This document shows positions 27,941 to 64,000 of a stretch of 64,000 bases of DNA, piece after piece. The notes beneath the pieces were generated by a model, which saw only the letters and a list, made by a program, of their open reading frames with translations, searched no databases and was not told the DNA's origin. The translations under genes were made by a program, and so were the position numbers. Numbering within the stretch: the stretch's first letter is position 1; every line of letters begins with the position of its first letter. Source of the DNA: Macrostomum lignano (Eukaryota); contig NIVC01000219.1 of NCBI GenBank assembly GCA_002269645.1, positions 286,262 to 350,261 of the forward strand, in the 5' to 3' direction.

Positions 27941-28449
27941 ACAAAATACTTCAGGCTAAAGCAAATTAAGAGTTACTCAAGCGAATATGGGTCCCCCCTC
28001 CAAAGTCAATTGAGTACTTGCCCACAACGCTACTCGGTAGGACGAATCGAATGCAAACTGACGGTGCCATCGATCCAGCGGCTTGGACTCCTGCTGATTG
28101 TTTAGACTTTGGTAACACCGGTGGAGAAACAGGTTCGAATTCTCGTAGGAGATCAGACAGGCTGGCATCCGCCATCATTTCAGCCATTTTTTCCAGCGAC
28201 TGGAACAGGCCTGTGCGGTGGCTGCTGCTCGAGCGTGGCTTTTTCATTCGTCTCCTCCGGCTCCAACTCGTGCTCCTCAAAAAAAGCCGTGTCCAATTTT
28301 GGCGGAGAAAGCCTTGTCCAATTCTGGCGGAGCAACGAAATCAGCGGCAGCACCATCAACGTTATAGCTATGTACCGGCGTCTGAAGACCGAGAGCAACA
28401 GCCGCTGGAACGTCAACGCTTGCAGCTTGATGGTCAATGGTGGCATGTC

Positions 28450-37389: not shown

Positions 37390-39855
37390 GCTTCTCAGCT
37401 AGTGCAATAATCCTTGGTTTATTAATAGCAATAATCCTTGATTAATCAAGTGCAATAATCCTTGGTTTATCAAGTGCAATAATCCTTGGTTTATCAAGTG
37501 CAGTAATCTTTGGCTTATCAAGTGCAATAATCCTTGGTTTATCAAGTGCAATAATCCTTTGTTTATCAAGTGCAATAATCCTTGGTTTATCAAGTGCAAT
37601 AATCCTTGGTTTATTAAGTGCAATAATCCTTGGTTTATTAAGTGCAATAATCCTTGGTTTATCTAGCGCAGTAATCCTTGGCTTATCAGGTGCAATAATC
37701 CTTGGTTTATCAAGTGCAATATTTGTTTATCAAGTGCAATAATCCTTGGTTTATCAAGTGAAATAATCCTTGGTTTATCAACTGCAATAATCCTTGGTTT
37801 ATCAAGCGCAGTAATCTTTGGCCTATCAAGTGCAATAATCCTTGGTTTATCAAGTGCAGTAATCCTTGGCCTATCAAGTGCAATAATCCTTGGTTTATCA
37901 AGTGCAATAATCCTTGGTTTATCAAGTGTAATAATCCTTGGTTTATCAAGTGCAATAATCCTTGGCTTATCAACTGCAATAATCCTTGGTTTATCAAGTG
38001 CAATAATCCTTGGTTTATCAAGCGCAGTAATCCTTGGCCTATCAAGTGCAATAATCCTTGGCTTATCAAGTGCAATAATCCTTGGTTTATCAAGTGCAAT
38101 AATCCTTGGTTTATCAAGTGCAGTAATCCTTGGCCTATCAAGTGCAATAATCCTTGGTTTGCCAAGAGCAATAATCCTTAGTTTATCGAGTGCAGTAATC
38201 CTTAGTTTTCCAAGTGCAGTAATCCTTGGTTTATTAAGAGCAATAATCCTTGGCTTATCGAGTGCAGTAATCCTTGGTTTGCCAAGAGCAATAATCCTTG
38301 GTTTATCAAGTGCAATAATCCTTGGTTTATCAAGTGCAATAATCCTTGGTTTATCAAGTGCAATAATCCTTGGTTTATCAGATGCAATAATCTTTGGCTT
38401 ATCAACTGCAATAATCCTTGGTTTATCAAGTGCAATAATCCTTGGCTTATCAAGTGCAATAATCCTTGGTTTATCAAGTGCAATAATCCTTGGTTTATCA
38501 AGCGCAGTAATCTTTGGCCTATCAAGTGCAATAATCCTTTGTTTATCAAGTGCAATAATCCTTGGTTTATCAAGTGCAATAATCTTTGGTTTATCAGATG
38601 CAATAATCCTTGGCTTATCAACTGCAATAATCATTGGTTTATCAAGTGCAATAATCCTTGGCTTATCAAGTGCAATAATCCTTGGTTTATCAAGTGCAAT
38701 AATCCTTGGTTTATCAAGCGCAGTAATTTTTGGCCTATCAAGTGCAATAATCCTTGGTTTATCAAGTGCAGTAATCCTTGGCCTATCAAGTGCAATAATC
38801 CTTGGTTTATCAAGTGCAATAGTCTTTGGTTTATCGAGTGCAGTAATCCTTAGTTTTCCAAGTGCAGTAATCCTTGGTTTATTAAGAGCAATAATCCTTG
38901 GTTTATCGAGTGGAGTAGTCCTTGGTTTATTAATATCAATAATCCTTGAATAATCCAGTGCATTAATCCTTGGCTTATCAAGTGCAACATTCTTTACTAT
39001 CAAGTGCAATAATCCATGGCTTATCAAGTGCAATAATCCTTGGCTTATCAAGTGCAATAATCCTTGGTTTATCAAGTGCAATAATCCTTTGTTTATCAAG
39101 TGCAATAATCCTTTGTTTATCAAGTGCAATAATCCTTTGTTTATCAAGTGCAATAATCCTTGGTTTATCAAGCGCAGTAATCCTTGGCTTATCAAGTGCA
39201 ATAATCCTTGGTTTATCAAGTGCAATAATCCTTGGTTTATCAAGCGCAGTAATCTTTGGCCTATCAAGTGCAATAATCCTTGGTTTATCAAGTGCAGTAA
39301 TCCTTGGCCTATCAAGTGCAATATTCCTTGGTTTATCAAGTGCAATAGTCCTTGGTTTATCGAGTGCAGTAATCCTTGGTTTTCCAAGTGCAATAATCCT
39401 TGGCTTCTTGAGTGCAGTAATCCTTGGTTTGCCAAGAGCAATAGTCCTTGGTTTATCGAGTGCAGTAATCCTTGGTTTTCCAAGTGCAGTAATCCTTGGT
39501 TTATTAATAGCAATAATCCTTGGCTTCTTGAGTGCAGTAATCCTTGGTTTGCCAAGAGCAATAGTCCTTGGTTTATCGAGTGCAGTAATCCTTGGTTTTC
39601 CAAGTGCAATAATCCTTGGCTTCCTGAGTGCAGTAATCCTTGGTTTGCCAAGAGCAATAGTCCTTGGTTTATCGAGTGCAGTAATCCTTGGTTTTCCAAG
39701 TGCAGTAATCCTTGGTTTATTAATAGCAATAATCCTTGGCTTCTTGAGTGCAGTAATCCTTGGTTTGCCAAGAGCAATAGTCCTTGGTTTATCGAGTGCA
39801 GTAGTCCTTGGTTTATTAATAGCAATAATCCTTGGCTTATCGAGTGCAGTAATCT
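37390..39855. repeat. 24-bp satellite array (AAGTGCAATAATCCTTGGTTTATC)n
   Basis: About 2.5 kb of period-24 repeats; it generates the spurious 8-aa-repeat ORFs. Confidence 0.97.
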
Positions 39856-40769
39856 AAGTGTTTTTATTTAGTCCTTTAATAAAACCTTTTAATAAAAAAA
39901 TTTACACTACTACTTTTAAACTACTTAGATTCGAACCTAGGTCGCTGCATTAGCAGTCTGGTCTGTTCAGCTCTAGGCTAGCTCTCATCGAAGTTATCAG
40001 TGATGTTGTACCACTTATATAATTCAACACTCACATCAAGTCAGGTAGAGTAAAAAGTCTCACGAAGCAGTTATGACATAATCAATTTCTTAGGCAAGTC
40101 AGTACCAGTGTCTATGAAAGTTTACAATATGGTTACGTAATATAAATTCAGTACTGCGCTATGCTTTCACACTCAAAGCTGTGACGCAATTCAATTGAGT
40201 GTCAAATTCAGCCAGTACACAGACGATAAATAAAGTGTATTGTGATGCAATCTATTTCAGAATCAGAATTCAACCAGTCAGTTTTTCTGCTAGCATTCTT
40301 ACGATGCATTTCAAGTCGAAAGAGCTGCTTGACCTTTGCAAAAAAGCATGTTTTTCGAATATTTAATCCCTTTAGCATCAAGCAATTTCTTAGCCACGAT
40401 GCATGTACTGTCACGGGAAAATTTCTGATCGAACAGTGCAAGTTCGAAGAAAATCGGTTGAGCCGTTTTTGCTAAAATCGATCACACACACACACATACA
40501 CACACACACATACCGACAGACCATTTTTAGTATATGGACTAGCAATCTTCGCCCCCCCGTTGGGGGGCATCTGTATAGAATCTCTGTTCTCTACAAGTAA
40601 CAAAAAGACAGCCAAATAAAGCCTTGACAAAGACAACAGACAAACTGCTCAAATAAAGTGTAATGCAAAAAGAAATCATCCCAAGACAGCAAGCATCCCC
40701 CAGATAGCAAGCATCCCCCAAATAGCAAGCATCCCCCAGATAGCAAGCATCCCCCAGATAGCAAGCATG

Positions 40770-42661: not shown

Positions 42662-45600
42662 TTAGTCTTCAGTGAGAACTTCTGGAAACACAACGTTTCT
42701 GGTCCTTGTTCCCGGAATCCGGACGCGAACATTTGCCGCGTTCTTTGCTCGTGACAGCGCCGTGTACAGCTGGCCATGCGTGAAGCAACCGACTGACAGG
42801 TCAATGCCAACTGTGTCCAGAGACTGTCCCTGCGACTTGTGAATCGTCAGGCAGAAACTCGGCTTCACAGGGAACTGCAGCCGCTTAAAACTGACGGGGA
42901 GGTCCGCATTGCTAGGAATCAGCGGGATTCGCGGCAGAAGAATCTCGTCTCCCGTAAACTGGCCGGCGGCAATCTTGCATCTAAGCACGTTCTCGCCCAT
43001 TGCGAGTATGATCAGCCGCGTACCATTGCACAATCGTGGCGGGTTGATGTTCCTGAGAAGAACTACTGGCATACCCACTTTTAGCCTCAGCAAGTGAATC
43101 GGAAAGTTCGGGGCATCCAGCTGGTTGAGCAACTCAGGCGGGAAGTGCGTAGCGGCATCCTCATCGGCCACACTGTCTATTGAGCGGTACTCCCGCAGGC
43201 TGCCGGGGAACATGCCCAGGCACGTCTCGTTGATGGCATCCACTGAGTCATTGTACGGCGCCAGGATCGCTCGGCTTGCAAAGTAGCCGTCCCTCTCCAC
43301 TGAGGCCTCAAACGATGGGTACACAAAATTTATCAGATCATTGAGCGGCGCCTCCGCAGAAATAATGATCTCAGCAGGAAGAGACACTTTCTCCTCTGCA
43401 TCCTGCTCAATTGTTCCGGATCCGATCTGGGGGAGTTAAAAGTAAAATATTTAAAACGCTAGACAGACTTTAAGCAAGGCATTCTTGAATAAGCCACAAT
43501 TTTTAAAATGGAGCTCTCAACACGAAAGAAACCGAACATCCTTAAATCTTCCAATAAATAAACTGATGAAAACAAACTTACCTGCTTGAGTAGCTCGGTG
43601 TATCTCAAATACGTTGCAGAATCGGAACTGCTCAGCAATCGGATGTTTCTTGTAAGGCGATGCCGCCGGAAAAATTTCCACAGTGGGGATCTGCTGACAC
43701 ACGCCATGACGCTGTTGGCTCGAGTCCCATGCACCACAACGGGCAGCAGCTGGCGAAAGTCCCCAGCGCAAACGAAAACCACTCCGCCGAATGGCACGTC
43801 CTGCTTCCGCACGTCTCGCAAGCACCGGTCGACGGCCTCCAAATCCTTCCGGTTTGTCATAGAAATCTCGTCCCAGACAATTAGACGCACTGTCCGAAAT
43901 AAAGCGGCCTGTTTGGACTGCGCTCCAACAGCGCACACGTCTTTGCTCGAACGGATCGCCCGAATTGGTATCTTGAACCTGGCATAGACAAATAGTTTCA
44001 CCATGCCGAACATATTTACAGCACACGAAATATTTACAACTGCTTTTTGAAATATTGACAATAAATTACTCACGTTGAATGCGCCGTCTGTCCACCTGGC
44101 AAAAGAGTCGCTGCGATTCCAGAAGCCGCAACGGCGAGGGCGACTTCACCCCGGCTGCGCACGAAGGCTAGCAGAACCTCCAGCAGGAAGGTCTTGCCAG
44201 TGCCAGCAGGTGCGTCCAGGAAGTGCAAGCCGCTGGCGCCGTCCACAAGATTCTGAGTCACGGACTCGTACACCGCTTTCTGCTCATCTGTCAGCATTGG
44301 TAAGCGCGCCTCAGTAATCAGTGCTTGCTCAACCGTATCAAACTGCATTGGTCCATCTTGAGGTGTCACGGAGGCCGCAGGCAGGCCGTACTCTGGCAGG
44401 CTTCTCCCGCCCATGGAGATCAGCATGCTCTGAAGCTCACGCAGCGCCAGGTCAGTAATCTCCTCGGTGCTCAAGTCTCGGTGGTGAAACCGCAGGTCCT
44501 CGCTGAGATCCTCGGCAAAACTGCACCAGAGGTCGCTGCCATCCTCAGGCTCACCCCATATGAGAATTACGGCCAGAAGATGTCTCAGGGCTCTTGGCAT
44601 TCTTGACTGAACGGCCTCAGCTAGACACCGCCGCCAGTGGTCATCTCGCTGCAGCAGGCCAAGTGCCATGCAAGCAGCCTTGGCGCTCGGATGCACAACG
44701 CCGTCCACGGTCTGCAGCGCCTCGAAGCTAGTCGGTCCCCTAGCATTCAAAAGGAGCATTCGAACATAAAATAAATCACCTGCTCTTGGACTCACCGTGT
44801 ACATGCGTGCAACGTTTTTGTTCCGCACTACACCCGGATGGCCATCGACTCGCACACCCTGCTTGGCCCGCCGCCACTCTCTTTCGCTGGAGTGCCACAC
44901 AAAGTAGGACGGCACCTCCGTGTAGAGCAAGGACCCAGCAAATTCGTCAATACGGCACAGCTTGAAAAATGCCGTCAACGTCGAATCCTTCGGCGTTCTC
45001 GCTTTTGCTCTTGCGGTCCCCTCGTTGAAATACACGAGCTGCTCTTCCGACTTGTGAACGCAGAGTCGGATGACCGCCGGAAATCTGTTGTGCACCTGAT
45101 CAGAAAGTGGAAGGAAATATACAGCCTTTAAGTTTCAATGGAAATTCAATTTATACTATGACGAGGTGTTCACAGCTCTGGTTAAAATGAGCCAATAATA
45201 ATTAAAATGCGAATTACTTCAAAGCCCAAGATGGTATTCACGGCTTCCATTGGACCAATGTAGCGCGCGGACAGGTACTCTTTGATCTCATCACGTGGCT
45301 CATTTCCTGTCCTTTGCGTCGGCTGCTGGTCACCCACTGCCTGCTCTCTCGGTTCAGTTGGATTCCTATTGGCATCGACTTTGAACGTCGCCATGTCGCC
45401 ACCCTTTAGCAGGTACTTGATCACGTACTTGACCGACTTCACAGTGGCGCAAACTTCGACGTTCAAGTGGCATACAAACTGGAGCAACAGGTCAGGGCTG
45501 TACGGAACGACCCACCTGTTTTAATGAAAAAATAATATCATTAACTTTCAGAAACAAAAGCAGCAAAGCACAACTGAGCAATATATTAGCGTTTGAACTC

Positions 45601-48600
45601 CCCTGTTGTCCATGCGAATGCTCCGGCCTTTAAACAGCTTGTCCACTGTAAATCCGCCCATCTCAGGCGACAGTCTGCGGTACAGTGGGTAGCCTGTATC
45701 GCTGGTCAGCGTCACCTGCTGGAATTCTTTAGGAAAGCCCTTGCTGCATTCGCCATTCTCCATGCAAGGGCACGCTGGATTGTCCTTGCCGCAGGGGCCA
45801 TGGATCATGTGCGTCTTCACCAGCTCATACAGCACGGGCTGCTGCTCTGGGTCCGGAATCTCGGCAGACACGATGTCATCGTATCGGTCCGGAGTCACTC
45901 GCTGACCGCTCACGAGCCACAGCAGAAAGTGCACATGAGGAAGACCTGGAGCGTCAAAAAAGTAGAAAAAATCACAAACCTTTGTAAATCTAAATTTCAA
46001 TAAATCTTAAAACTTTGATTCTTGCAAGTCAGAATTTTTACTCACCACGCTTCTGGTACTCCAGTGAGCAAACGTGAGCGGCCTCTTTCCCATAGCGCTT
46101 GGTCAACTGGGCCAGCAGAGCTTTCTTCTTCATTTCAAAGACTCGGCTAACAATGTCGGGCCGGTCTTCTGCCCGCTGTCCAGGCAGCAGCTGGGCGCTG
46201 ATCTCCGGCCATTTCGGATTGCACGTTGCGGTGACAAACAGGTCCGGCTTACCGAACTTGTGAACATAGGTCATAGCGTCTTGTAGCCTCTCCATCAGGT
46301 ACCTTGGCCCGCCAACGAAGCTCGAAGACAGAAGCACATGCGCGGGCTTGCCTATGTCACTCGGATCTCTGTCGGTAGACCTGCCATCAGCCGCAAACAA
46401 AGCGTCCCGCAGACCGCTATACGTCTCGCTGCGCAGGTCCTGCTGATGGGTCCGCAAATACAGCAGCCTCTCTGCCTCAATCTTGGCACACATGTCCACC
46501 AAGTACTGCTGAAATAATCTTCGGCCATAGTGCAGCACACTGAACTGGCCCGCTCGCACCATGATTTCGCTCGCATAGTATTTCATGGGCGTTAATTTCT
46601 TGCCATTACTCATCAGCAACTCCGGGTGCCAGCCATCTTCGCCATTCGGGAACAGCAGCACATACTCCAGCGGGTCGTATGAGCGGTGCGTCTCACTGAT
46701 TCGCTGGGAACCGCCTCCACGCAGCTGAATCACGACGTCCCGACTGGCCGGTGTGTTCTCATTGTCCTCAACGATCAGGATACCGACCTCGTTCGCCGTA
46801 GGCAAGTTGTAGCGCCTGATTTCAAACGGATTTTGTGGGATACAGAGTCTGTACAAATTGGATAATTAGATACTTTATTACGCAAAATATGTTATTAAAG
46901 TGTCTTGCAGACATACCGAATGTGTTCCCCAGATGGTCGACGGTCAGGGTGAATCACGATTCGCGCATCTCCCAACTCCGGATCTTGACTGATTCGATGA
47001 GCGACTGCCCTCAGGCTGCGGACATAGCCGTTACACTCGTGAAGCAGCGTCTGCAGCAGCTCCAGTAGCTCCGGCTTCACCTTCTGGCTGAGACTCTGGC
47101 GGCTTTCAAGTTCGCGATCATTGAAATACACTTGCCAGCCATGGGGCTCAGCTGAATCTTCTGCAAACAGCGACGCCGTGTTGTGATGCAACTGGCCGCT
47201 GATGATGAAGCTGGGACACCAGCCTGGCACCAACCGCAGTTTGGCACCCAGCGATGTCAGGTGCAGCGCCGAGTTGTAACTTCTAATGTTGGTCAGGAAC
47301 TCAGCACTCATTCTGTGCTGCCCCATGTACAGATCCGCCAGCACTTGAGGCACGGTGCGGCTGGGTAGCTTTACCTTGCCTTTGGCGCAGCAGAAATTCC
47401 TCGTCTCAGAGCACCAAAGTAATGCACCGCATTGGTCGCATGCTCTGTCCATTGGGCCACAGTTATGGGCTGGCGCTTCAGGCCTGATAATCCGTTCTGG
47501 CCTGTGATTGGAAGGATTAGGATTAGGAAGGATTAATGGCAAATAGTTTTCCCGGTTAATCTTTCATTTTACAAAAAAATATTAGAATAAAACTTAAAAC
47601 TTGATTTCGATGACAAATAAATTATGATGACCAGTCACACCAATGACCTACCTCTCTTGAGCAGGTCTTGCGCCAAAATGACCTGCACTCTGCTGAGTTA
47701 ATCTTGGCTCCTCTGCATCTGCAATGGGCTCAGAACTGAAATCGGATTAGCAAATCGCAATGACTCATAATGCTCATGACGCAAAAGAATTCGGACGATT
47801 GCAATCGGTGGCTGCAAAGGGGACATACAGTACTGCAATACACTGCCATTTTCTTGATAAATTACCAGATCAACATTAAAACAACGGCTTAAAAGCGGAA
47901 CAACTTCATCAGGCACATATGTGCCTTCAGAAAAAGATGAATCAACAATGAAATCAGCATTTTCTGGCAAAACAAAGCCTTGTTCAATCAATTCTGGCAT
48001 AATCTGCACTACACGGCTCGTCAGCTCGTGTCTTAAAGATGCTGCATCGGTCTCAAGTGGAGTGCCCTGCAACTGGTCACAGACTGCATGAAAAAAACAG
48101 TTCCCATCACCAGGAATTCGAATTATGCGCAACGCATCAAAAGGTACCACAGACGGTGTGGCCAACTCACTACTATCAAACCTGGAATAGAGGAAATAAA
48201 GATTTAGTATATTTGGATTATACACAACTTCATTTGGCGGTTCTTAGAATAGTGAAGAATATTTTTATGCCATTCTACATTCTTACAAACCAGTCTAAAA
48301 TGTAATTGCATTATAAACAAAGATTCTTCGAAAACCATTTTCATCAGTAAAAAATGCTTAACCGATTCTCATAAATTAATATTGTTATATTAAATACCTA
48401 TCTCATAGATTTAAGATTCTTCGAAGCCGACTCACACATATAATATTCTTAGAAACAGGCTTCAAAACTTAATATTATTAGAAACCGAATTTATTTTAAT
48501 TGTAGATTCTATCTAAAATACTTATCTCATATGTATAATTCCTGGAAGCCTATCTCAAAAATATGAGAAAAATTGCGTTAAAAGACTTAGAAATGGGCTC

Positions 48601-49252: not shown

Positions 49253-51484
49253 ATTGGAATTCGAATTGAAAAATAAGAATTTTGAGTGATAATGAAAAAA
49301 TAGTATGGGGGTTGTGTGCGAGAAAAGAGTATGGTATGAAATCTATCATGTCACGCGTTTTAAACTCATCAACCACACAACCCCAAAAAGCTGGACACCA
49401 TTTGTACACTGTCGTCAGACTGTCAGTGTGTACAGCAAGCCTAAATTCTGTCTCCAACACCCGCCTGCTAATTGGTCAGGACTTTTTATTATTTAATATT
49501 CTCTCTAAAACACCTTGGCCCAGTACTGTAATGAATTTTTAAGCCTAAGGCTAACTCTCCCATGTTAAAGGATTGAGATAAATTTTCTGAAGGAGGCGCA
49601 AATCTCAGTAGCCAATGTACATCTCTGTGGCATTTAATAATAATTCTATTTATCGATGGATGGTATGCACTTTTTATGATACGACGGTCTTACTAAAACG
49701 TACTTTAGCCTATAGATTGGGGGTCTTGAATATCGCATATGAAAAGGCAACTCAGGTTTCTTTAGCTTTAGCTTGCGATGTGAATCGATTAAATATACTC
49801 GTACGCTCGTATGTGTTTCACTCTCTCACTCTCCCTATTTCCAGCTTTTAAAGTTAGTTTGTTAATTGTGCACGTGAACATTTTATAATACACATCTCTT
49901 CTCGCAGTGTACATTTATAATTCTCTAGAGTGGCGACAAAAAATACTAATTTACTGACGCTGCCTAGTTTAATTCCAGTCAGAATGGCTCGCAGTAGAAA
50001 GTTCTGTTGACCCTTGCAGAAAGGCATGTGTTATGGAATATTCGTTTATATTCTATGCTTTACATGAGCTACTTATGCTTGAAATGAAACATTTGGTTCT
50101 TGGTTCTGGAGTAAGCATCGACATCTCAGCAATTCCCCCACTAAGCGTTTTACATAACGCTTCTTTTACTCGTATGTTTAACGCGATCGAGATGAGCACG
50201 AAGCAGAGATGAACACGAAGCAGTTATGAGAGTTATGACATAATCAATTTTTCAATCGGTCAGTATCAGTTCTAATTAAAGTTAACAATATGGTTACGCA
50301 GTCTAAATCAAGTCTCGTGCTATGTTTCCACAGAGTGTTTTCAACACTGTGACGCAATTCAAGTCGGAGTTACAATTCAGTTGTGATGCAATCTTTATCA
50401 CAATCGGAATTCAGCCAGTAGGTTTTTTCTCTAGCATTCTTACAACTCATACAATGCATTCCAGGTCGAAAGAGCTGCTTGACCTTTGCAAAAAAGCATG
50501 TTTTTCGAATATTTAATCCCTTTAACATTGAGCAATTTCTTAGCCAAGATGCATGTACCGTCCATGGAAAATTTCTGATCGAATGGTGCAAGTTTGAAGA
50601 AAATCGGTTGAGCCAATTTTTCTGAAATCTATCGCATAGCTAGTTAGTTACAGACATTTCATTTTTAGTATATAGGATTTTTTCTCTAATCGATCACATA
50701 GATAGATAGATAGATAGATAGACACAGACAGACCATTTTTAGTATATAGGACGAGTGGAACTCCTCCGTTGGAGGAGAAATCCGCTGAATTGAAATCCCC
50801 GGAATCCCATGGTTGGAATGTTGAATCTGCAGAACTCCATATCGTAACCCTAACCCTAGCTCTTGGGCCAGCGAAATTGAGCTACTGAAACGATCGCCTG
50901 CCCCCGTTGATGCATATGCATTGCGCCATCACTGTCGCAGCCCGGTTCTCACAAATGTACACTGCATTTAGCCGAATTTATTCATTTATTTCGGCCTTGT
51001 TACTTGCAAGCGTACAGTAAAGATCAAGTCTATTCAATGCAAAACTAATGGCAGTGTTTAATTAAATTATATTTACATATTATATACATAAAATAATCAG
51101 ACAGCACAATCCGAAGCAACCTGTCAAGACGAAAAGCAGTAGAGACCATGAAAAGCACATCAGTGTTTGAAATTGACATCGGGAATAATTAAAGAAGAGC
51201 AGAGTAGCACCACACAAAGCAAAGCAGAATGCGTTACTCGCTAATGTCGGAGCAGAGCAAAAACAGCAACTGAACTTCATAAAAGCGATTGACTGACCCA
51301 CAGCCAAGCTAGAGACCAAAGGAAAGAGGCGCGACTTCCTCCCGTAAGCACTACTGCAAGAGGATAATTTGACAGCTATCAATTTTGAGCTTCCTAATTT
51401 GGGTTACAACAATTTCTTCCTATTTCAAAGAGTCTTTGCCCCAAGTTGCTAATAACTTTTTGGCCCAGGTGGTCGCACATCTTT

Positions 51485-51754
51485 TTACATCCCTTCTGCC
51501 GTTAAAATTATTGAAATTGTAAATCGAAGCCGAGTTTCAGCTGAGCGAGCGGTCTGCTCCTGCTGACGCCGGGACTGCAGCCTTTCTTCACGCTGGACCT
51601 CCCCCTCATCGTCCAAGCGTTTATTCTTCGCTTCCCTTACCTTCTGCAGCCGAGCTTCCCGGTCAGCAGAGCTCTCCTCTCTGCGCTTCTTCTTCGCCTT
51701 TGAAGCATTCCGCGCACTACTCGCGAACGATGCACCTCTGCTTCGCTTGGGCAT
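51485..51754 (-). pseudogene. N-terminal remnant of a third Helitron RepHel gene
   Basis: MPKRSRG...KAKKKRREESSADREARL resembles the N-termini at 11794 and 49252. A hairpin ctcctccgttggaggag (50761-50777) suggests its 3' end abuts Helitron 2. Confidence 0.6.
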
Positions 51755-53104
51755 ATTGAATGATGAGAAATGAGAAGCTATGAGAAAGCTAGAACCTAAA
51801 TGAAAAATAAGTTATGAAGACTTTGACTTGAGAAGCATCAGTTTATATGGAATTCAATCATAGGAGAGTTGAAAAATCAATGAGCTTTCGCTATTTGGAC
51901 TGTGTACACTGCGGTGATTCATTTATTTAATCTCAATATTATCTCCAGCCAATCACTCAATATGAAAATCAGTCTATAGCCCATGCACCTCCCCAAATGC
52001 ACAGGGAGAGTCTAGGCTTGTGCATTGCACAGTCAGAATTGAAATTAATGAAACCCCTCCCCAGCCACTTAACGTTTTCACAATTGAAATCAAGAAATTT
52101 TCTATGACAAATTGCTCTGATGCAGTTGAGATTTCGGAACAGAAAATTATACCATTCTGTTCAGTTTTTCAAACTCTTTCCAACGGTGTGATTCACTTTT
52201 CTGTAGCTTCAAAATTGAAAGCAGAAATTAAGGTGCAAGTTTTCCCGTTTCTTACTTACAGAGCGCAATGTACACTCGGAGTTAAAATGAAGCCAATCCA
52301 TTCTCGCGCAGTGTGCACCTCCACCCCATTTTAACACTGAGCAAGTAGGCAGGCCCGACCGCCGCCAACCAATTCTCGTCTCAAATGCCGGTACCCCTCC
52401 CACAGCTGAAATGAAATACACTGCAGAGATAGGAGAAAAGTTGTGGCGCAACCATACAAAATAGCGCCAAGTGGCAAGTCCATGGAATGCGATAGACATC
52501 TGGTTGTCTGGTTTGTGCTGTTTTCTGCTTTTTTGAAGCAATTAAAATTGAAATTTGAAAATGAATTTTAAACTGTAGCATCGTCGGGACATTTGACATG
52601 TTTTGGTACCGGTTTGAAAGTTGAGTTGCAAGAATCCTAGGAGGAGATCGTCGACAAACCCGGCCCACCGGCCCACCCTACCACCGGACCACGACGTCAG
52701 CTTTAGTAAAGAGAGGATGAATGGAGCGCCTGTATCTTTAGTGTTTAGAGTTTTTTCTGTAAGTAATTCATGTCCCTACAAAAAAGCAGTTAAAAGCGTA
52801 CAGTGTAGTGACGCTCTAGAATAGGAGATAACAGCGATTGTCCAATCATGCAAGTCTGCAAGCGATACCCAATAGGAAATCTACGGAATTGATCGATGAC
52901 GGCAATAAAATGTTACTTTCGCGATTTAAGAGCTGAGAGTATTTCACATTTGAATCTTTGAACCAGTAAACTATTTCTTTGCCTCGAATTATGCAAAGCA
53001 CATTATTTCTTACAGTACTTCTGTCCAGTAAGTATCGATGCATCTTCACTGAATATTTGCTAAAATGATTGTTATAGCATTAATCATTTCCTAAAATCTT
53101 GCAG

Positions 53105-56100
53105 TTTCAACTGAAATCTGTCAGACTGCAATGGTCTTCAATAAAGTGGACAGAATCGTATTAGACTCGACTGCAAGTACTGAGCTTATCAACATAGCGA
53201 ATTCCGAATCAAACATTGACTGCCTAGCTAAATGTCAGTCAAAAGGATGCGCAGCTGCAAGCTTCATCTTAAAAAATGGTACTTGCAAGCTTTTGATCAT
53301 TAATAATGCTTCGAACAACCATGAGCTGCCAGATGGTTTTAGAGACAATGTTTTAATTTCAAAAAGCAACGACTCGAATTTGTGGAAGGCCGGGACGTTT
53401 GATAAAATGCTGAGAATGAGAGCCAAAGTTAACATGACCTATTTGAGTAAGTATTTGCTCAAACACTGTTCTGTATTCACTTTTTTTTAATTCATTTTTT
53501 TATTTGACGAAATCAGAACGAACAAGTAAGACTGTAAGACTGGCAAGTAAGTAAACTTACTTTAACTAGACTAAGAAGCAGCTGTTTACACTTTCTAACG
53601 AGCAGAAAATACCATATTCTTTCCTGAACAGTAGAAATTAGCAGGATTCTTAATCTCTCATAACAAATTCACAGTTCTCAGAAACGATGATGAGGAAGAA
53701 AGTGAAGGCAACTGCACACCCTGTGTATCTTTGTGAGCTGAGGTTTCAGCGAAATGGGCATGACTGCTTGTCTCCTCGCTGCCTGCAGGTCGACTATCAC
53801 TTTTATTTGCATTAGTGCTCAAAATTACTACCTGTCAACTTTAGACAGCAGCTCTGGGAGGCTGGGCAGCGTGCAGCAGCTCCTCATCAACATTACCGGC
53901 TGCTACCGGATCGAGGTGGGCGGCGCCAGAGGCGGCCCTGGAAAATCTCGCCTTGGTGGTTTGGGCGCCACAGCGTCTGATTGTTTCTGGCTGAACGCTG
54001 GCACCCGTCTGGCCATCGCGATCGGTCAGGCAGGAGCACCGTCGCTGTCGAGTCTAGCTGGAGCCGGCGGAGGAGGCGGCACCTTCGTGTACACGAACTC
54101 TGACACTGTCTACAGGAATGTCTCCATCAGCAACTGGAATGTCAGCGACTGTATGCGGGATGGTAGTTCGGAGGCGGCGAGCTGCTACCTTCTTCTTGCG
54201 GCTGGCGGCGGCGGCGGGGCCTCAAATTTGAATGATGGTGAGTGTAATCAGAAATAAACCTGCGGGTACCAGTCTAACTATAACTTGGGCCAATACTACC
54301 AAATCAGTCAATTAATTTGTTGCTTTTTTATTTGTTGAATGGAAAAACTAGAAAGGTTTCCATGTGCAATTTTGTTGGAAATATTGTTGTGGTATTCTAC
54401 GAGCTAATCAGGCTAGACTGATATTTATATAATATAGAAGTGCATTAGGAGAACGCTGATGGAAGCAGCAGATAAAAGATGCAGGTTGCTGGCCCACAGG
54501 AGACCCCAAAAGCCGATGGGCAGACCATACCAGAGCGCTGCACCAGCGTTCGTCGATAAGTCTATGTGAGCTCTGAGCTGCAGCAGCATCGTGGGGCTCA
54601 GAGCAATTTTTGCTTTGCTCGGGCGTCCCGCTTGCGCTTGACGCCCTGTAGCGCTAGGCGCACACTACTAGGCGTGGGTGAGTCAGGTCTTCCCGTTTGA
54701 GCCAGGCAACTGCATGTAGAGATCTGCATGAGGAATTGCCTCTTGTCAGGCCCTAAGAGTCAGCTGCGACGGTGAAGTCATCACAAGGTAGTTGCAAATA
54801 GTTTGGTGCCTGTTCCCTGCGGATCATCATTTGCTTGACCGCTTTAAAAAGCCGATAGTAAATGGTGACTTCTTTGGCGTCGGCTGGGAGAATATGTGCT
54901 TGATTTGCACTTCGGAATCATACCGTAACCCTTTCAGAATCAGAACTTAGCATTTGACTGTAGTTCCTCTTTTCACATGACTAGCTTGTTACGAGTATAT
55001 GTCCGTCGCACGATAAGGCGGTCTCTGACATAATCTTGGGATTTAAAAGGCTAGAAACTGGTGCTGGTGGTGGTGGTTCACCGGTGATTCCTGTAGCCAG
55101 GAGACGCTGCTCTATCGTTTAGTTTTTTAATCTTCTCTTGTCATCGCATGTTCACTGGCCGGGTGATTGTCTTTGCGAATTCAGCAAAAATGTGAAAAGT
55201 GACAAGTCCTGCGAAAGAATAATTGGTGTTAAACTGATGCACACTGACCGACCGTTTTTTTGGGCGGCTGTGCCTTTGGCTATTGAGGGCGTGTCTCGTT
55301 TGTGCTTTCTGGTGGCAGCAGGTCCGTAGCTAGCAGCGGAAAGTCGCCCACCGAAAAACTGTCGTGCTATTTTATACAGGTAACCTCGTCAAAGCGCATG
55401 ACCGTGACATCTCCACCAGTTCTCCAATATGAACGCTTTACTCGTAGCACGCTGTAACCCCCATGAAAATTTATTGCTCTGCTACTAACGCCATCTAGCT
55501 CGTAGTAACAAAGTAATGTGCCTAAGCTCATTGGTGCGATCCTAAGGCTTAGAAATTTCATAAAGTTTCCATGAGCGTTCTTAAAAGGGGCTCTCAAAGA
55601 CGCACTTTTATTTATCGATCTTTTCTTTATAAATATATTTTTAGGCATCGCTGGCCAAGCTGGTACGTCCGGAACAAATTCCAAAGGTATTTTGACTAGC
55701 AGCGAAGGATTTGGCGGCTCCAATGGGAATCCGGGATACTTAGATCCGGAGAAGCGTTTCAGCACAAATGCGCACGGCGGCTGCGGCGCAGGCTGGCTTG
55801 GTCGTGCCGTAAATGCTCGAAAGTTGAGCATTGATGGCGACCACGGAGGCGGCCTCGCTGACGGCTGGCTGGGCGGAGTTACTGGTAACGATGGTACAGG
55901 AGGCGATGGGGGCTTTGGTGGTGGCGGTGGAGGCGGTAACAATGCTGGAGCTTCTGGAGGCGGCGGTGGTTTTAGCGGTGGAGGAGCCGGTGTCGGCTAC
56001 ACCCAGGTCGGTGGTGGCGGTGGCTCTGTCTGCTTCGGAGGTGTCAGTTGCAGCATCAAAACTGCTGGCAACTCTGTTCGCGAGCAAGGCTTCGCGACCG

Positions 56101-56135
56101 TGCAACTGTTGAATTATCTGGCGTATGGTTGCTGA
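53105..56135 (+). CDS. Host gene encoding a PAN/apple-like module plus an ALK/LTK-type glycine-rich domain (multi-exon)
   Basis: CLAKCQSKGCAAASF...CKL (PAN-like); GCYRIEVGGARGG...LAIAIGQ.G...GGGGGTFV...LLAAGGGGG; last exon 55645-56135 is in frame after the donor at 54238. The 5' exons are unresolved. Confidence 0.7.
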
Positions 56136-58117
56136 TGAGATCGAATAAAAACTTTGTTGTAATACTTGTAAGTACGAGAAGTTTGGACTGCAGAAGTTAT
56201 AACTCAGAATTACGCTCGTAGCAACAAAATATTATACCACTTTATGAGCGAATGAACTAAATTGTCAGCCAGTGCAAGTCATTACATTAAGAATTAAGTT
56301 TGATTGATTTCATTGACGGTTCCTATGAATCTTGAACTCAATGCGCGAAAGTGAGCCTAGCACCCTCCTAGCCCTTTCGTAGCTTTAACACTTAAAAACG
56401 TCAATGATCGTTCGAAACCTGTTTCGATTACTTTCCTTCTCTTTATAGTTCTCTTTCTCTTATTATTTCATGATTTTGTAAAATGTATTCTCGTCGGTTG
56501 TGTGATTTTATGAATTAATTTCCATGTAAGGTATGTAATATTGTTCTTGAAACTTTGCTTTCCTTTTAAATGTTTCTTGAAAGTTTCTTGTTACTACCTT
56601 ACGTAAACTTTTTTGTACTGTAGGAAACCTAAAATGTTACGTAAATTATTAAATTAATAAATATACCACAGCCAACCGTCATATTTCCAACCCCCCACAT
56701 GTTTAGCCCATATGACTGATAAACAAAACAAAAGAACCAGCGCCTGGCTTTCCAATTCACTTCGTTAAATGAAATCCTTTTAAATTGAATAGTTATTTGA
56801 TGAAGTCCTGGACAAGCCTGTACAGCCCTGCGGAATAAAATCCTATCACCTTATCAAGAATTCATTCTTGTCCCATATTAACAGGGCTAATAAATCCTCG
56901 CTCTGGAACGATCTATTAAGGGAGAGGGCGCAGAAACGATCAGAGTTACCAAAATTTTCGCGAATGAACCGCATTCTATAGGTACTCGAGGTAAGTGGAA
57001 GAAACAGCGAGTCTGTTTTAATTAGAAAATGGCTATTAAATGCTATGCTGTGAAACTTTACTTTCCACTCCAAACAAAAAAAGTTAAAGATAATTCATCA
57101 GTTTTGTTTTTAGATTGCTACCAGACTAAAAAAGCCAACCTTTTTACGTCGAAAACCTTTCTATATTCCCATCTTTTTCCTGGCTCTAACCCTTTGCTAT
57201 TATCTTCTTATCTGCACTTTACGTTTTTCCAGCTCTCATCTGCCTCTTTAGCCTTTGCTGTTTTATTTCGTAGCTGTTTTGACGTTAGTAACGTTCATCG
57301 CCTTCTTACCCTCCGCTTTCGCAAAATCCCTATTTTCGCTTGATATATTGACGTTGAATGGTCTCTCCTCATGTGCTGATGTGAAAAGCATTTCCCTTAA
57401 TGCTAAGGCTACTACAACTATTCCACAGAAACTCTACCCCGTCTGATTCGCCATATTTTATCTAATGCAAAAAGTTCGTTTCATCACTTGATATTAGACT
57501 ATCATCACTCGCAACGAGTGCTTCAACAGCAGCTGCATCCTTGAAAACGGTCTTGTCGCGCTTTTTGCGAAATCATTGTATTTTTTGCTCATTCAACAGC
57601 TGCTTCAACTGCACTTATCGAGTCTGCAGATACAAAAGTGCCCGTTTAAATATCCTCATGTAGCGTTGGACTTAGCCGTTAACTCAAAATTCAACATTGT
57701 CATAATTTTTTAGAGCATATGTCTGCATTTTCATTGCATCAATGTGGCCATTCTGGCCTATGACATGACATTTTCTATGACATTTATTTTAGTAGACGGA
57801 ATACAAACAAAGCAACAGGACAAAAGATGCGCATACAATGTGTTTTTAAAAGTTAGTCAACAGTTAGTCAGTTGAGTTGCCGTTAACGCGCCAAATTATT
57901 CATTATCAGACATTGAGTCCGCTAGTTGTTCAGGCCTTAAAAATCAAACGTACAATTTTGAAATGTGCCAGAAAATTTGACACTGGTCGTTGAAACGAGC
58001 AAAGGCGTATGCGGTTGGCCTTCAGCTTGATAAACTTCGCAGGTACCTACTGATTTCTTGATTGACATTACACCAGTAGGGCCCACACGCTTAACGCACA
58101 CGGTCGACGTACTAGCG

Positions 58118-58772
58118 TCAACGAACGGCTTCGGACATAGCTCTAAAGTCGGCGTCTCTCCTAATCCTTGAGTATCGTTCTACACTCACCGGGTTCTTGT
58201 GACCAGTGCTGCAAACGATCGCGGAATTCGAAAATCCATGCACCTTCAAAACAGTAACGTGCGTTACACGAATGCAAGGATTCGTGTATCGCTTAGAGAG
58301 CCCCAGTTTAGTAGAAAGTCGACTCATCAGTTGATCTATCGTGTTCTTGCCAACCTACGGAAGCCACAGTACCAGCGCTTATCCGATATATCTTTCAACG
58401 TTGACACACGTTTCTTGTGTGTATGTGACTGGCCATAGACTAGCTGTGGGTACACGTTTCTTGACACACAAGCAACTCGATTTTAAGATTGTGCTGATTG
58501 TTTAGGCACTGAAGGTACATCTTCAATGCAGCAACAGGACAGCTCCTATTTTCAGACTCAGAGTACATGCGTGCTTGTTTAGTATCCTGGAACTCGGTCT
58601 TCTTCAGAGATGTCCTTGAGTTCTTACTCAGAAAGTCATGTTTCAGGGCGACATAGTCGCGCCCCTTAGAATCTTGTAGAAACGCGAAGCTTTCTAAGGT
58701 TAGAGTTGGTAGAGTTTCTCGTCTTTGCAATCAAAAGTAGTAAATTAAATGAAACATGACCTCGTCTTGCAG
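58118..58772 (-). pseudogene. Crypton-type (DUF3504-like) tyrosine recombinase relic
   Basis: LQDEVMFHLIYYF.L..RETL, CPVAALKMYL and YTNPCIR...STGHKN...ERYS, where the H-x-x-R His is replaced by P; stops and frameshifts present. Confidence 0.75.
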
Positions 58773-59288
58773 TACGACTTATTAGACCTATCAAAATAAT
58801 TTATTGATTTATCGGTAAATAATAATCGCAGCAAATTCCTCTCGAGATTTAAGCTGATTAGCCAGCTTGTACTTAGGCAGTCTTGCATGATGGCATCGTA
58901 ATTAAGAATTGACAGGCCGTCAATTGATACTGAACCAACGTTAAAGTTGTTATTTTTGTTAGTTATGCAAAAAAGACTTTCGCGCTGATTTAAGTTAGCA
59001 GAAAGAACTGTACGCGCGTGAATAAAAAATAATTTTTTTAAGCGTACGAAGTTTACGGCTATTTCGTTAGGACTATAGTCACAAATGCAGGCAGATCACA
59101 AAGTAATCAATTGATGCGTATAATAGAACCGGAGCGAGAGTCGGCAGTGTCGGTTAAGTGAAAAACCACCAGGACCTGACGCGTTTTCGTTTGTCTAAAA
59201 GGAATGTGAAACCATATTAATATCTCGCGAGTAGTCTGTCGTGATCGTTATGATAAAAATAGTTTCTAAATGACTGATATATGGTTGG

Positions 59289-60074
59289 TACGTTGAAGTT
59301 CACAAATATAACAGCTACGGTTACAACACGAGACGTGACGGCAGTGACATGGGGCGTGGTCGTGTTCTCAGTCACCCGTCGAGGATGACCGAGCTAGTTC
59401 CAGTCGCGCTTTAAGCAGCACAGCTTGTGCTTTGATAGGCTAGGAACAACTTTTCGGCACGGTTCGTGCACCATAACAAATAACCGCTACCTTACCCGCA
59501 GTCGGCACTGGCGACGAGCTTAAGAGTTTCCGGTCAATCTCTTGAGCAGGCCGCTGCTCCGAGTTGACAGTAAGCTCGCTAAAGTCGTGTGCCGGGACCG
59601 GTTCTGAATGTTGTGACTGATGGTCTGACGACTATCGCGGCCATGGCGGTGGCGGAAAGATTGCCCGCACTTTTGAGCATCACCGGAAGAACCGCAGTTA
59701 CCGTTACGGTAAGCGCCATTGACGTCGAGTGAATGACTGCTCTGAGCAACTGAAGCAAAGAATCTTACCGGCGGCTACTCCCAGCCCGTCAGCCGTAGCA
59801 CAGGTGGTGAGCTAATTGGGTGCGCTGTGGTCGTCGCCGCATGTCGGTAAGCCAACTAGCACCTACCCTTAGACTAAGCAGAAGCTGCTCACTGCTAGCC
59901 AGGGCTACGGGGCTGTAACGGGCGGTTTACGAGGACTTGCGACGACTGATATTCCAGTAGGATCCGCCACCGTCCGTTTTGAAAAACGGTCTTCTTGAGT
60001 TTCCGTTCGCTTTCCTGCCGCGATTAAACTAAGCGCTCACCGTTCGATTTGTCCACTCAACTTATTGTCCTTAT

Positions 60075-60132
<58 letters not shown>

Positions 60133-61876
60133 CTCTCTTTTATCCCACGTTATCACATGTGGGAATTGCATGCTCGCATGTCGGATGTCGTGCAACTCAG
60201 CCGCTGACCGTGGGGGCATCGATTGACGGTCAAGTTTACCTCCGAATACTCAAGACTCGAAACCACATGTACCGGAGATTTCACAAGTGTCACGAGTTCT
60301 ATCGTCCTTAGTCAATTATTTATTTGAACTATTTCAATGATGTCACTCAGTATTTTAAGTACTTTTCAATAGTTCGCTTTTTGTGGACTAGGGATTAGGT
60401 CCCGTCAGACTTAACGTCAGCATCTCGGATGTAGCTCTGGGCGTTGGTCGACGACCTAGACCTCGGTCTGTTCCAGCTGACGCACGACCCGGAAGACAGG
60501 TCGAGCGTGTACCTTATGGTGCGCCTCTTATACTACTTTGTTTTGGATAGTCTTTCTGTCGGTTCGGACCGTCTCTACTGGTGATTTCGAGACCTCGACG
60601 ACTGACAGATACCGTTCCTGTGACCTGAGCAAAACGATCAGCTTCGACCCGCTTAGCTGGTGCCAGTGGTACCTTTGGTTCGATTGGCTCGCGACGTGCT
60701 TTGTCAGCGTGACAGGCTACGACAGCTTCGGCGACACGTTAACAACTTCGTCTTCTTCGAAGAACTGCTCTGCGATTACTAACACTCTTTCTAGTAAAAA
60801 CGAGATAAAACTACCATGTGCACATAAATTAAGAGTGCTAGGACGTGAAAACATCAATGACTCGCGACCATCTCGTCTTCCAAATACCTTCCCGACGCGA
60901 CGCGCGAATGAACTTACATCATGTCTTGATTCTATAATATCGTTCTTCGTTGCCTTCACCAAACTGTTTTTACCGTCATCAACTCATGTTGTTGAAAGTA
61001 AGGGATGAGTTAGATTAAGGTTATGTTTGGTAAAAATCATATACCTTCTTACGGTTTCTTACACAAGAACCCTTTTTTACAGTAATCTTCTAAAAACCTT
61101 CCTCCTGAAATTTAGTCTCTAAAAAATGTTCTTTTGCTGACCTTTACGAACATTCTTTGTCGAACAAAGCTTTAAGTTTGAAAGACAGAAATTTCCAGTG
61201 TCGACTAGTGTCGGTGCACAAGTGGTACCCAGTGATGCCCAACGCGCCGGTCGGTTAGTGCGTCGACTTCATGTTCGCATTGCGGTGTTGACCGGCCAAC
61301 GTCGAGACTGTTTCGCCCGCTGCTAGACGGGGATTGACATGAATTGATGCGTCTACCATCCCCCCGCAGTTTCAGGGCTGTGCTATCTACCTCATAGTTA
61401 CGTGGACGACTCCTGTGGTGTTTCCGGCTAATGGTCACTCTTAGACTTGATTAATACACTATATACGCTACGCACGTGACGTACTCCTGCTAAAGAGATC
61501 TTCCGCGACGCAGTACCACGGGTGTGGAAAGATGCTCATAAATAAAAATCCACCTCGTAGATATAGTTGTTTTTAATGTGAACTAAACGACGTATATAGG
61601 ACGTCTAAGGGTCGGTACTACGACTTTTCACCTCTTAGAGTGCCACCGCTCCTGCAAGGACATAAACGGTCTCCAGGCCCGAGAGTGGACCAAGTTCCCC
61701 AAGTGCTCGTCTGGGTGCAACGAGTGCATTAGTACATGAGCCGAGTGGAGCCGGGCATGCGGTCAAGCGTCGCTCTTAGAAAAGTCGGCTGACACCGCGG
61801 GTTGTAGTTTTCGCGTTAAAAACAGTTGCGACGAATGTAGAAGTTTAACCACAGACCAAAACGGCCGAAGTAAATT
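59289..61876. CDS. alp: Alkaline phosphatase gene, readable only as the base-by-base complement from left to right (exons 59289-60053, 60402-60782, 61196-61435, 61606-61876)
   Basis: The complement gives a signal peptide, AKHVVLFIGDGMG, DSAGTATAFLTGVK, THATPAAAY, VEAGRIDHGHH, TADHSHVF, ESHGGEDV and a hydrophobic tail, with canonical GT-AG introns and a few single-base frameshifts. Confidence 0.93.
60075..60140. repeat. (CT)n microsatellite, which is (GA)n in intron 1 of the complemented ALP gene
   Basis: Directly visible. Confidence 0.95.
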
Positions 61877-63040
61877 AAATGAGTTCGCTAAGTAAAAGGA
61901 TTGATTAAAACTATACAATGCATTGGCTAAAAAAAAAATTAAAACTCGAAATATAAAACGGCCTAAAGTTATATTTAGATAAAGTGCCTAAGTTGCTGAT
62001 TAAAAAATGAAGATATGCTAAGCGTTGAAGTTAAGCATATTATTGGATTTATTGTTCTTATGGTTAATGAAAGAAAGTAAATAGTCAAAGAAAAGACATT
62101 CGTACAGCAAGAAAAGTTGATAATTAATGGTTGGTTATTTGCAAGATGGGGATAAGTCTTAAATGTTTCGTTTAAAACCTACGGAAGTATACTAATTAAT
62201 ATGTAAAAACGCAAGATAAACCACGTTTGACGCAAGTTAATCCACCCTGTGTGCGTCGCCTTTGCTCGGTTCGGCTTTCTGAGAGAGTGCAGGTGGTTCG
62301 ACTAAAACCTTATTCCCGGAATAGGTTCCGTGTCTCTGACATGTACGGACTGTAGATCTTTCAGACAAGGCGACATGTCGGACAGACTTGTAGACATACT
62401 TACGCACGAACGCATAACCACGCGAGTTCTCCGTCGTCTTACCCGCTTACTAGTCTTGACACGCTACTACAGCGGTTTCCGCGACGATCGACGTCCCACG
62501 GACGTCAGGTCACTTATAAAATAACAACAGTCGTGATTTTTCATTACTTTTTTAGGTATTCATATCTAATGTGTAACGACGACAGGTTATGACACTTATC
62601 GATTGTAACGGCTGTCAACTAAAAAATATTCCTTGCACGTTTCAGCTCGCTTAGGAACTATGAAGCATGTAGTTAGGAATCGATTTTACGGCACAAAAAC
62701 TGTCCTCTCCGAAGTATTAAAATATTTCAAAAAACCCTCAAACAAATTAGTTCTTAGAATTGATCGAGGAAAACATTGTTCAGACAAAAAATTGCGTGTT
62801 CACAAAGTTACGGGACTCCCCAAGTATCGGTATTGACGTCGACAGTCGAAATGCTCGATCGTTTCTTTCTGTCGCTCAGACGAGGACCAAATAAGTTAGA
62901 GGGGTCGTCTGCGTCTATCCGACAGTTCAGAAAATGCTCGAGCGTAAAAGGATTCGACTCGGTGGAGGCTCTGTTAATGTAGGCCTGTTAATGTAGAAGC
63001 TACCGCGCAGACATTACACTTCAGTATTTGCAGTAACACG

Positions 63041-63871
63041 AAAAAAACTCCGTCCCGCTGTATGCACCCTAACACGACACTTTAGGTGAAATTGTCACAT
63101 AACCGGCGAGAGGCATTATACTGCCCATAACGCTGACTCCGGCCTGAGCAGGCACACAAGCGCGCGGATATACGTGCGAAGTCATACGCCCTGACACACA
63201 ACGACAGCGGCCCTAACTTTATGTATCGTTAGGCATCAGGGCTTGGCATTGTTAGTAGCCCCAAGTATCCAGTACCGAGCAGTCTAACCCAAGTCTGACC
63301 GAGTACCGAGCATTTTACATGTAAAAAGCGGACGAGTACGAAGTACTCACCAGATCTTTATATAATTTATATCGCACAAATGCAATACGTTGAGCAAACT
63401 CAAAAACGTAATTGAGCTGTGCAACTTCTTCTTTAAGCTTCAACTTCACCAGGAAAAATCACTTTTTTGAAAGTTTCTTTCCTAGACCTACCTTTTCTAG
63501 GAAAGAATATCGTGAATATTACTTTTTAAGTTTCAATCCCCTTCACCTCGACATCAAAACTTGACAGTTCAGTTGGGAATGGTTGATAAAATTACTCGTC
63601 TAATACTCGTCAAAACTCGATTGTAAACGATCACCGTTTACAAAAACATTTTTGTACACCCAGTACCAAAGCACCGAGTACCGAGTACTCGCCCAGTCCT
63701 GTTAGGCATGTACCGGTACACTTCACTGTAGCTTTGGAGTTCAGCCCTCAAGGGCATTAATTGAACAAGCAGACCCAAGCCGAGATTACAATTTAGCCCC
63801 TTAAATTAATGATCACTTGAAATCGAATCTGACGTAAAAACACCGTGCTTGACCACTGGGCTACGGCCTCC
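63041..63871 (-). mobile_element. Diverged copy of the tRNA-SINE at 14480-14851
   Basis: Shares aaccggcgagaggcatta, cagcggccctaacttta, ttaggcatgta and gggctacggcc with the first copy. Its tail (63041-63056) lies in the complemented segment. Confidence 0.8.
63237..63701. mobile_element. hAT-type MITE (465 bp) inserted in the SINE
   Basis: 8-bp TSD ttaggcat (63229-63236 and 63702-63709), imperfect TIRs CAGGGCTTGG / CCCAGTCCTG, and subterminal CCGAGTA repeats. Confidence 0.85.
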
Positions 63872-64000
63872 TTATCAAAAAGGTGCTTAAGTTTGTATCC
63901 TTTTTTTACTTGTATGGAAATGAGGTTTATGAAAAGCGTTTAAATAATAAGCAAGTATAGCACCACAATCGGTCAGCAGTTGATGCAGGGACAGTTAGAT

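Follow-up and report, generated by a model that had tools for sequence, protein, structure and literature searches.

A 4,139-bp interval of a Macrostomum lignano contig is written as the unreversed complement and conceals a copy of an alkaline phosphatase gene

The window, by which we mean the whole stretch of 64,000 nucleotides that was analysed, ends in a region that is collinear with two Macrostomum lignano loci of the assembly GCA_002269645.1, denoted L001 and L002, which served as comparators throughout. This region contains the following features (strands are given where they apply):

52717..58917, left-hand flank, not complemented, collinear with L001 and L002, 98.5% identical to L001 3407-9630
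58121..58730, minus strand, tyrosine-recombinase-like ORF fragments in normal sense, fully outside the block
58918..63056, block written as complement without reversal, whose complement-only version matches L001 and L002
59289..60053, plus strand after complementing, alkaline phosphatase exon 1, start ATG written TAC, deletions of 2 nt at 59503 and of 1 nt at 59746
60068..60146, dinucleotide microsatellite of intron 1, written (CT)n, in true sense (GA)n
60402..60782, plus strand after complementing, alkaline phosphatase exon 2, flanking AG/GT written TC/CA
61196..61435, plus strand after complementing, alkaline phosphatase exon 3, window-specific insertion of 1 nt at about 61306-61308
61606..61876, plus strand after complementing, alkaline phosphatase exon 4, stop TAA written ATT
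63041..63826, short interspersed repeat split by the right edge, with normal-sense matches of 63059-63236 and 63700-63826 to 14514-14795
63057..64000, right-hand flank, not complemented, collinear with L001 and L002, 98.6% identical to L001 13774-14715 and 98.7% to L002 13303-14245

Throughout its 4,139 bp, delimited to the single base, the block consists of the base-by-base complement, unreversed, of the normal-sense sequence at the two independent comparator loci. Its complement-only version matches L001 9631-13773 at 98.2% identity and L002 9148-13302 at 98.3%, each match spanning about 4.15 kb with the left-to-right order kept, and the raw letters match these loci, on either strand, at the microsatellite only. 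On either side of the block the window aligns with these loci as written and without any change of order; its left flank is 99.45% identical to L002 945-9147 in a match that starts at window position 50718. Upstream of this position the window diverges from L002, and upstream of 52717 from L001; the window copy is identical to neither locus. A chromosomal inversion or other real rearrangement would account for the presence of two breakpoints and for nothing else. As an inversion yields the reverse complement of a segment, an inverted block would match the other strand of the reference with its order reversed, and no such match was found; instead, the complement-only version is collinear end to end with L001 and L002, and the minus strand of the window across the block is the true plus strand backwards. 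We regard the probability of such a rearrangement as practically nil.

A base-level view against the reference places the switches of sense, abrupt to a single base, at 58917/58918 and 63056/63057. The original prediction, made from the letters of the window, had described a segment of about 4.3 kb, complemented and unreversed, from 58773 to 63056; the phenomenon is borne out by homology, whereas the left boundary, given there as approximate, has to be moved to 58918. The cue for that boundary was the failure of a reading frame assigned to a Crypton, and the ORF fragment in question ends at about 58730, in normal-sense sequence, for reasons of its own. The minus-strand ORFs concerned (58121-58354 and 58443-58730) show a weak match to the Pfam Phage_integrase family (E=0.0037), which lies under the curated cut-off. 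A left edge drawn from composition alone, near 58,000 where the cumulative reversal score peaks, was rejected on account of the homology at 58917/58918 and the normal-sense coding at 58121-58730. At the right edge the predicted switch within a SINE at about 63057 proved accurate, the exact position lying in the short interspersed repeat, whose T-run and GAGGCAGGG (63041-63056) are complemented and whose remainder is in normal sense. This repeat is interrupted at 63237-63699, where some 460 bp of other sequence intervene, and a second copy of it lies at about 14486-14855. Neither ARAGORN nor Rfam detected a tRNA-like part in the right-edge repeat, and the predicted SINE is therefore retained as a short interspersed repeat, with the name serving only as a descriptive label. 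When the sequence at the edges was inspected by eye for special features, nothing stood out apart from a mirror repeat of 5 nt on the left side, no more than chance would give.

The complement-only reading of the block recovers the Pfam alkaline phosphatase domain (PF00245, Alk_phosphatase) with E=3.5e-110 and a bit score of 369 (cut-off 24.4), and a search with this reading returned 8000 homologues, the best match being an annotated M. lignano protein (P0001). The exon structure was taken from the one that reproduces P0001 exactly on L001 and was mapped to the window; all three introns are GT-AG in the complement reading and CA..TC in the raw letters. The stretches GDGMGVS, TADSAGTATA, THATPAAAY, EAGRIDHGHH, TADHSH and SHGGEDV all occur in complement-only frames, and include the catalytic serine motif (D-S-A) as well as conserved metal-ligand stretches, whose roles are those generally ascribed to them in the family. 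The Pfam match, the motifs and the exon mapping thus uphold the predicted four-exon alkaline phosphatase with its active-site motifs and GT-AG introns. The claim that the gene is unreadable in six frames and invisible to annotation held as well, since a tblastn search with P0001 gave no match in any of the six frames of the raw window and recovered all four exons solely once the block had been complemented. As written, the block does contain an ORF of 156 aa, which is spurious; exact look-ups of ten ORFs of the window, this one among them, returned no record, and as normal-sense control ORFs gave none either, the result says nothing about the block. The gene is not, however, complete as had been supposed: three frameshift indels, absent from L001 and L002, persist after complementing, namely the two deletions in exon 1 and the insertion in exon 3 (at about 61306), which puts the remaining coding sequence out of frame. 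The spliced coding sequence measures 1657 nt, which is no multiple of 3, and the reading frame across the spliced exons is accordingly not intact. These frameshifts may reflect either real decay or long-read indel errors. The C-terminus encoded in the window, SGFAGFI, is found in no annotated protein of the cluster, which have SGFVGFV in its place; this is compatible with a hidden gene and equally with an unannotated source. The hidden gene is an ordinary alkaline phosphatase, either one more copy or an allele of BOX15_Mlig021345g1/g2, and the enzyme itself is already known from other copies annotated in M. lignano.

The composition of the window can be read independently of homology. Within the block, and only there, the dinucleotide biases, expressed as observed/expected ratios, are mirror-swapped: CG/GC stands at 0.84/1.33 outside the block versus 1.31/0.98 inside, TA/AT at 0.78/0.95 versus 0.89/0.76, and CA/AC at 1.16/0.80 versus 0.85/1.10. 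The block scores -151 in trinucleotide reversal log-likelihood, whereas no segment of the same size elsewhere in the window scores below +59. Only one other 1-kb segment has a negative reversal score (16201-17200, -19.8); it is CpG-rich with a CA/AC bias in the normal direction, and we read the score as an effect of composition rather than of reversal. Long complement-only ORFs elsewhere in the window were likewise dismissed, since they fall within repeats or transposons rich in GC. When the entire window was complemented, it matched nothing in the window itself, and L001 and L002 only at 58918..63056.

The differences that separate the window from its two comparators run through both edges of the block. 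Substitutions relative to L001 occur at similar densities in the block and flanks (10.6, 8.7 and 11.7 per kb), indel rates are likewise alike, and transitions exceed transversions in the block (27:17) as in the left flank (32:22). Between about 55.7 kb and about 61.86 kb, a span that includes the left edge, the window lies near L002, and window-specific substitutions increase from about 61,860, inside the block, and continue unchanged past the right edge to 64,000. The mosaic of window-, L001- and L002-specific differences is therefore unbroken at both edges, and block and flanks constitute one haplotype. The whole window contains no Ns, which together with the unbroken divergence argues that an interval of already contiguous sequence was complemented. 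These results bear on a second possibility, that a patch from another source, either a read or a contig of another haplotype, was inserted as its complement during gap filling or scaffolding. Such a patch would belong to the appropriate general class of artefact, and the window-specific differences over the block's first 2.9 kb, which comprise four indels (three of them exonic) and no substitutions, could suit a poorly polished insert. However, L001 and L002 each carry unique indels at rates similar to that of the window, so that indels are not peculiar to the block; the edges and their surroundings are free of Ns, and relatedness to L001 and L002 stays constant there, the sole change point (about 61,860) falling inside the block. 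We consider a patch unlikely, and the stage favoured by the original prediction, scaffolding or gap filling, finds no support in the N count or in the pattern of differences at the edges.

A biological origin has been proposed for sequences of this type. Seligmann suggested that a polymerase may systematically exchange A<->T + C<->G along a stretch and return abruptly to regular copying (PMC4942731), and reported such a stretch, exchanged by A<->T + C<->G, from the 16S rDNA in the mitogenome record of Kamimuria wangi; the same article states that its author alone reads such GenBank records as 'swinger' sequences and that this exchange rule is the only one seen in DNA (PMC4942731). Applied to the window, this would mean a real 4.1 kb parallel copy that recently inactivated one alkaline phosphatase copy. 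The formal fit is good, as an A<->T + C<->G stretch is entered and left abruptly amid regular sequence. However, no such polymerase activity has been demonstrated, and the two other copies of the locus, L001 and L002, are in normal sense. A real event would have ruined the gene, whereas the complement reading retains its exons and splice sites along with low divergence in the exons. Moreover, the only exchange rule seen in DNA (PMC4942731) would be the expected product of complementing without reversing. These points render swinger polymerisation extremely improbable in the present case.

Based on these observations we propose, and hold to be very nearly certain, that the block is an in-silico artefact, in which an interval of assembled contiguous sequence was replaced by its unreversed complement; in the animal itself, the DNA is almost certainly the complement of the written letters. 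As no polymerase is known to copy a template in parallel orientation, we infer that software or handling was the cause. The stretch would first have been assembled into one contiguous sequence, and a later step would have swapped a coordinate interval to its complement (A<->T, C<->G) with the reversal omitted, complementing in place of reverse-complementing being a classic string error. This step might have been post-processing by the assembler, curation by hand, handling of the record or preparation of the window, as the sequence is compatible with each. The original reading of the block as artefact rather than biology is thereby sustained by the complement-only match to two loci, the composition swap and the unbroken haplotype.

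Biologically the case is unimportant, given an ordinary alkaline phosphatase with other annotated copies in the species; its value lies in quality control. A complement-only block escapes six-frame translation, protein-to-genome alignment and nucleotide alignment on both strands, and, if the error is in a deposited record, a gene copy is silently missing from annotation, copy-number counts and read mapping. Two cheap detectors suggest themselves: the k-mer 'reversal' log-likelihood, which set the block apart from all window segments of the same size, and a homology search using complemented sequence. A phrase search of the literature for complement-only database errors returned nothing on point, the swinger papers offering the only close description, and the identical pattern seen here, with its plainly clerical explanation, bears on the published claims of swinger DNA.

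With BOX15_Mlig021345g1 (PAA68686.1, contig NIVC01001376.1) and g2 (PAA75626.1, contig NIVC01000870.1) the window has four exons and three GT-AG introns in common, as well as the structure of the locus for at least 11-13 kb; with the block complemented, the DNA is 98.2-99.4% identical. Only the copy in the window stands in complemented form, for 4,139 bp, and it alone has the three frameshift indels and the distinct C-terminus (AGFI versus VGFV). An ordinary assembly misorientation, in which a segment is placed as its reverse complement, resembles the block in being local, in having two abrupt edges and in disrupting annotation; unlike the block, which is unreadable in six frames, a misoriented segment remains legible to gene finders on the opposite strand. 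Swinger DNA, as described for the 16S rDNA of Kamimuria wangi (PMC4942731), is closer: its homologues too match only after A<->T + C<->G exchange, and its switches are likewise abrupt and embedded in regular sequence (PMC4942731). The block differs from that case in being nuclear, in its length of 4.1 kb and in including introns. Whereas swinger records have been interpreted as a biological mode of polymerisation, the normal-sense copies, gene structure and haplotype continuity of the block point to an error of handling.

Across all six frames of the window as written, the region 58.9-63.1 kb contains no recognisable protein. Its plain complement, read left to right, displays open stretches with LFIGDGMGVS, TADSAGTATAFLTG, THATPAAAYSH, VEAGRIDHGHH, VTADHSHVFT and ESHGGEDVPVFA, which are hallmark alkaline phosphatase motifs. 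Concatenated, these stretches match Pfam PF00245 with E=3.5e-110, while neither the spurious ORF of the raw reading in this region (60538-61008) nor the spurious ORF spanning its left edge scores anything against Pfam; the hidden phosphatase noticed in the original prediction is thus real and far beyond chance. A database search with the complement-read protein gives Macrostomum lignano BOX15_Mlig021345g1 (P0001, 552 aa) as best match; this gene lies at locus L001 (GCA_002269645.1, NIVC01001376.1), and a second annotated copy, g2, at locus L002 (NIVC01000870.1). As had been claimed, the gene is invisible in every frame: tblastn with P0001 recovers all exons once the segment is complemented, and nothing in the raw window.

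Base-by-base comparison shows identity up to 58917, complement over 58918-63056 and identity again from 63057, defining a block of 4,139 bp with both edges exact; the two loci match the window as follows:

Left flank, window 52717-58917, normal sense: L001 3407-9630, 98.5%
Left flank, window 50718-58917, normal sense: L002 945-9147, 99.45%
Block, window 58918-63056, complement only: L001 9631-13773, 98.2%; L002 9148-13302, 98.3%
Right flank, window 63057-64000, normal sense: L001 13774-14715, 98.6%; L002 13303-14245, 98.7%

The left-to-right order of segments is the same in the window and both loci throughout flanks and block. An inversion would give the reverse complement; tested against L001 and L002 it does not hold, there being no reverse-strand match of the window to either locus except a microsatellite. 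The predicted right edge (63056/63057) was exact and does fall inside a single element, a short interspersed repeat, whereas the predicted left edge, 58773, lay 145 bp too early. The tyrosine-recombinase-like ORF fragments used as its landmark occupy 58121-58730 on the minus strand; wholly in normal sense, they simply end at that point and do not mark the block edge.

Composition gives evidence independent of homology. Complementing without reversal turns a dinucleotide XY into its complement, equivalent to YX in double-stranded statistics, and the observed/expected ratios are as follows:

CG / GC: outside the block 0.84 / 1.33; inside 1.31 / 0.98
TA / AT: outside the block 0.78 / 0.95; inside 0.89 / 0.76
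CA / AC: outside the block 1.16 / 0.80; inside 0.85 / 1.10

By a trinucleotide log-likelihood contrasting "as the rest of the window" with "reversed", the block scores -151 and every 4,139-bp segment elsewhere in the window at least +59 (mean +188); 1-kb sliding windows average -34 within the block and +44 outside. The sole clearly negative stretch outside it, 16201-17200 (-19.8), probably reflects composition, because it is CpG-rich and retains the normal CA>AC bias. This stretch is also T-skewed and non-coding, and adjoins a transposon-like minus-strand ORF (15382-16173). Neither the window itself nor its comparison with L001 and L002 revealed any further complement-only relationship.

Against L001, block and flanks have the same substitution and indel rates; the differences look natural, and the block is no more distant from the references than the sequence around it:

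Left flank: 8.7 substitutions/kb, 2.6 indels/kb, transitions:transversions 32:22
Block: 10.6 substitutions/kb, 2.9 indels/kb, transitions:transversions 27:17
Right flank: 11.7 substitutions/kb, 2.1 indels/kb, transitions:transversions 6:5

In a three-way comparison the window is near L002 from ~55.7 kb to ~61.86 kb, across the block's left edge, and from ~61,860 carries 15-18 substitutions/kb of its own, unchanged over the right edge to 64,000. Since this pattern is unbroken across both edges and the window contains no N, the block is of the same haplotype as its flanks, and it was an interval of already contiguous sequence that was complemented. An artefact had been proposed, and complement-only collinearity, shared haplotype and the failure of inversion bear this out; the same continuity and lack of Ns argue against the specific suggestion that a scaffolder or gap filler put in foreign sequence. 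They argue instead for a string operation after assembly, such as a script complementing without reversing, a curation edit, record handling or preparation of the window.

Four exons with three GT-AG introns, as predicted, are the sole structure on L001 that yields P0001 exactly, and map to the complemented block:

Exon 1: L001 10001-10768; window 59289-60053
Exon 2: L001 11116-11496; window 60402-60782
Exon 3: L001 11911-12149; window 61196-61435
Exon 4: L001 12320-12590; window 61606-61876

The raw window spells the start ATG as TAC, the stop TAA as ATT and the GT..AG introns as CA..TC. The gene is not quite complete, contrary to the original prediction: its spliced CDS of 1657 nt bears three frameshift indels missing in both L001 and L002. 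Deletions of 2 bp (59503) and 1 bp (59746) jointly restore the frame after ~80 codons, and a 1-bp insertion (~61306) throws everything encoded after it out of frame. L002 carries its own 1-bp exon deletion (59625 in window coordinates), which probably explains the annotation of g2 as a truncated 392-aa protein; because g2 too has such an indel, those of both copies may be consensus errors of long-read assembly rather than decay. These copy-specific indels sit in exons otherwise nearly free of substitutions. All six proteins annotated in the cluster lack the window's C-terminus, which fits this copy being unannotated. Exact look-ups with ten ORFs of the window, normal-sense controls among them, gave no match.

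Outside the block the window is rich in transposons and reads normally:

Helitrons: two copies, both on the minus strand, at 8557-11362 and 42662-48225 (domains Helitron_like_N, PIF1 and Pif1_2B)
Tandem repeats: long arrays at 37663-39871 and 28018-29260, with several frames open on both strands
Glycine-rich ORFs: 53754-56132 on the plus strand, upstream of the gene for the phosphatase, without Pfam match

An ORF after the larger Helitron copy has a weak OTU-protease-like match (E about 1e-3, under the Pfam cut-off), and the window also holds a retroviral-type integrase fragment. DKPRIIAL-like units make up a 720-aa ORF in one array; the other is GC-rich and built of QVQEQQLDGRCR-like units. 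In L001, sequences 75-85% identical to the glycine-rich ORFs occur downstream of the phosphatase gene (17293-17676 and 18159-18584, corresponding to positions past the window's end), an arrangement suggestive of a duplicated gene or repeat on both sides of the phosphatase. The repeat cut by the right edge has a second copy at ~14486-14855 and is interrupted by ~460 bp of other sequence (63237-63699), common to both loci, as the end-to-end alignment of the right flank shows. Collinearity ends upstream of 52717 (L001) and 50718 (L002), leaving only repeat-level matches of 77-78% (window 49300-52716 with L001 1-3406; ~49770-50717 with L002 1-944); insertions or deletions, probably transposons, set the copies apart in this part.

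The block is not a biological feature, and is of low biological interest with some use for quality control. No polymerase or repair pathway is known to perform the parallel template copying that a plain complement of ancestral sequence needs. The sole known published claim of plain-complement DNA is that of Seligmann's "swinger" sequences with A<->T + C<->G exchange, for example in the 16S rDNA of the mitogenome record for Kamimuria wangi (PMC4942731), and that the block is real DNA of this kind is improbable in the extreme. Their author himself notes that the swinger interpretation of the records is his alone and that only one exchange rule is seen in DNA (PMC4942731); a single rule is what we would expect of handling errors that complement without reversing.
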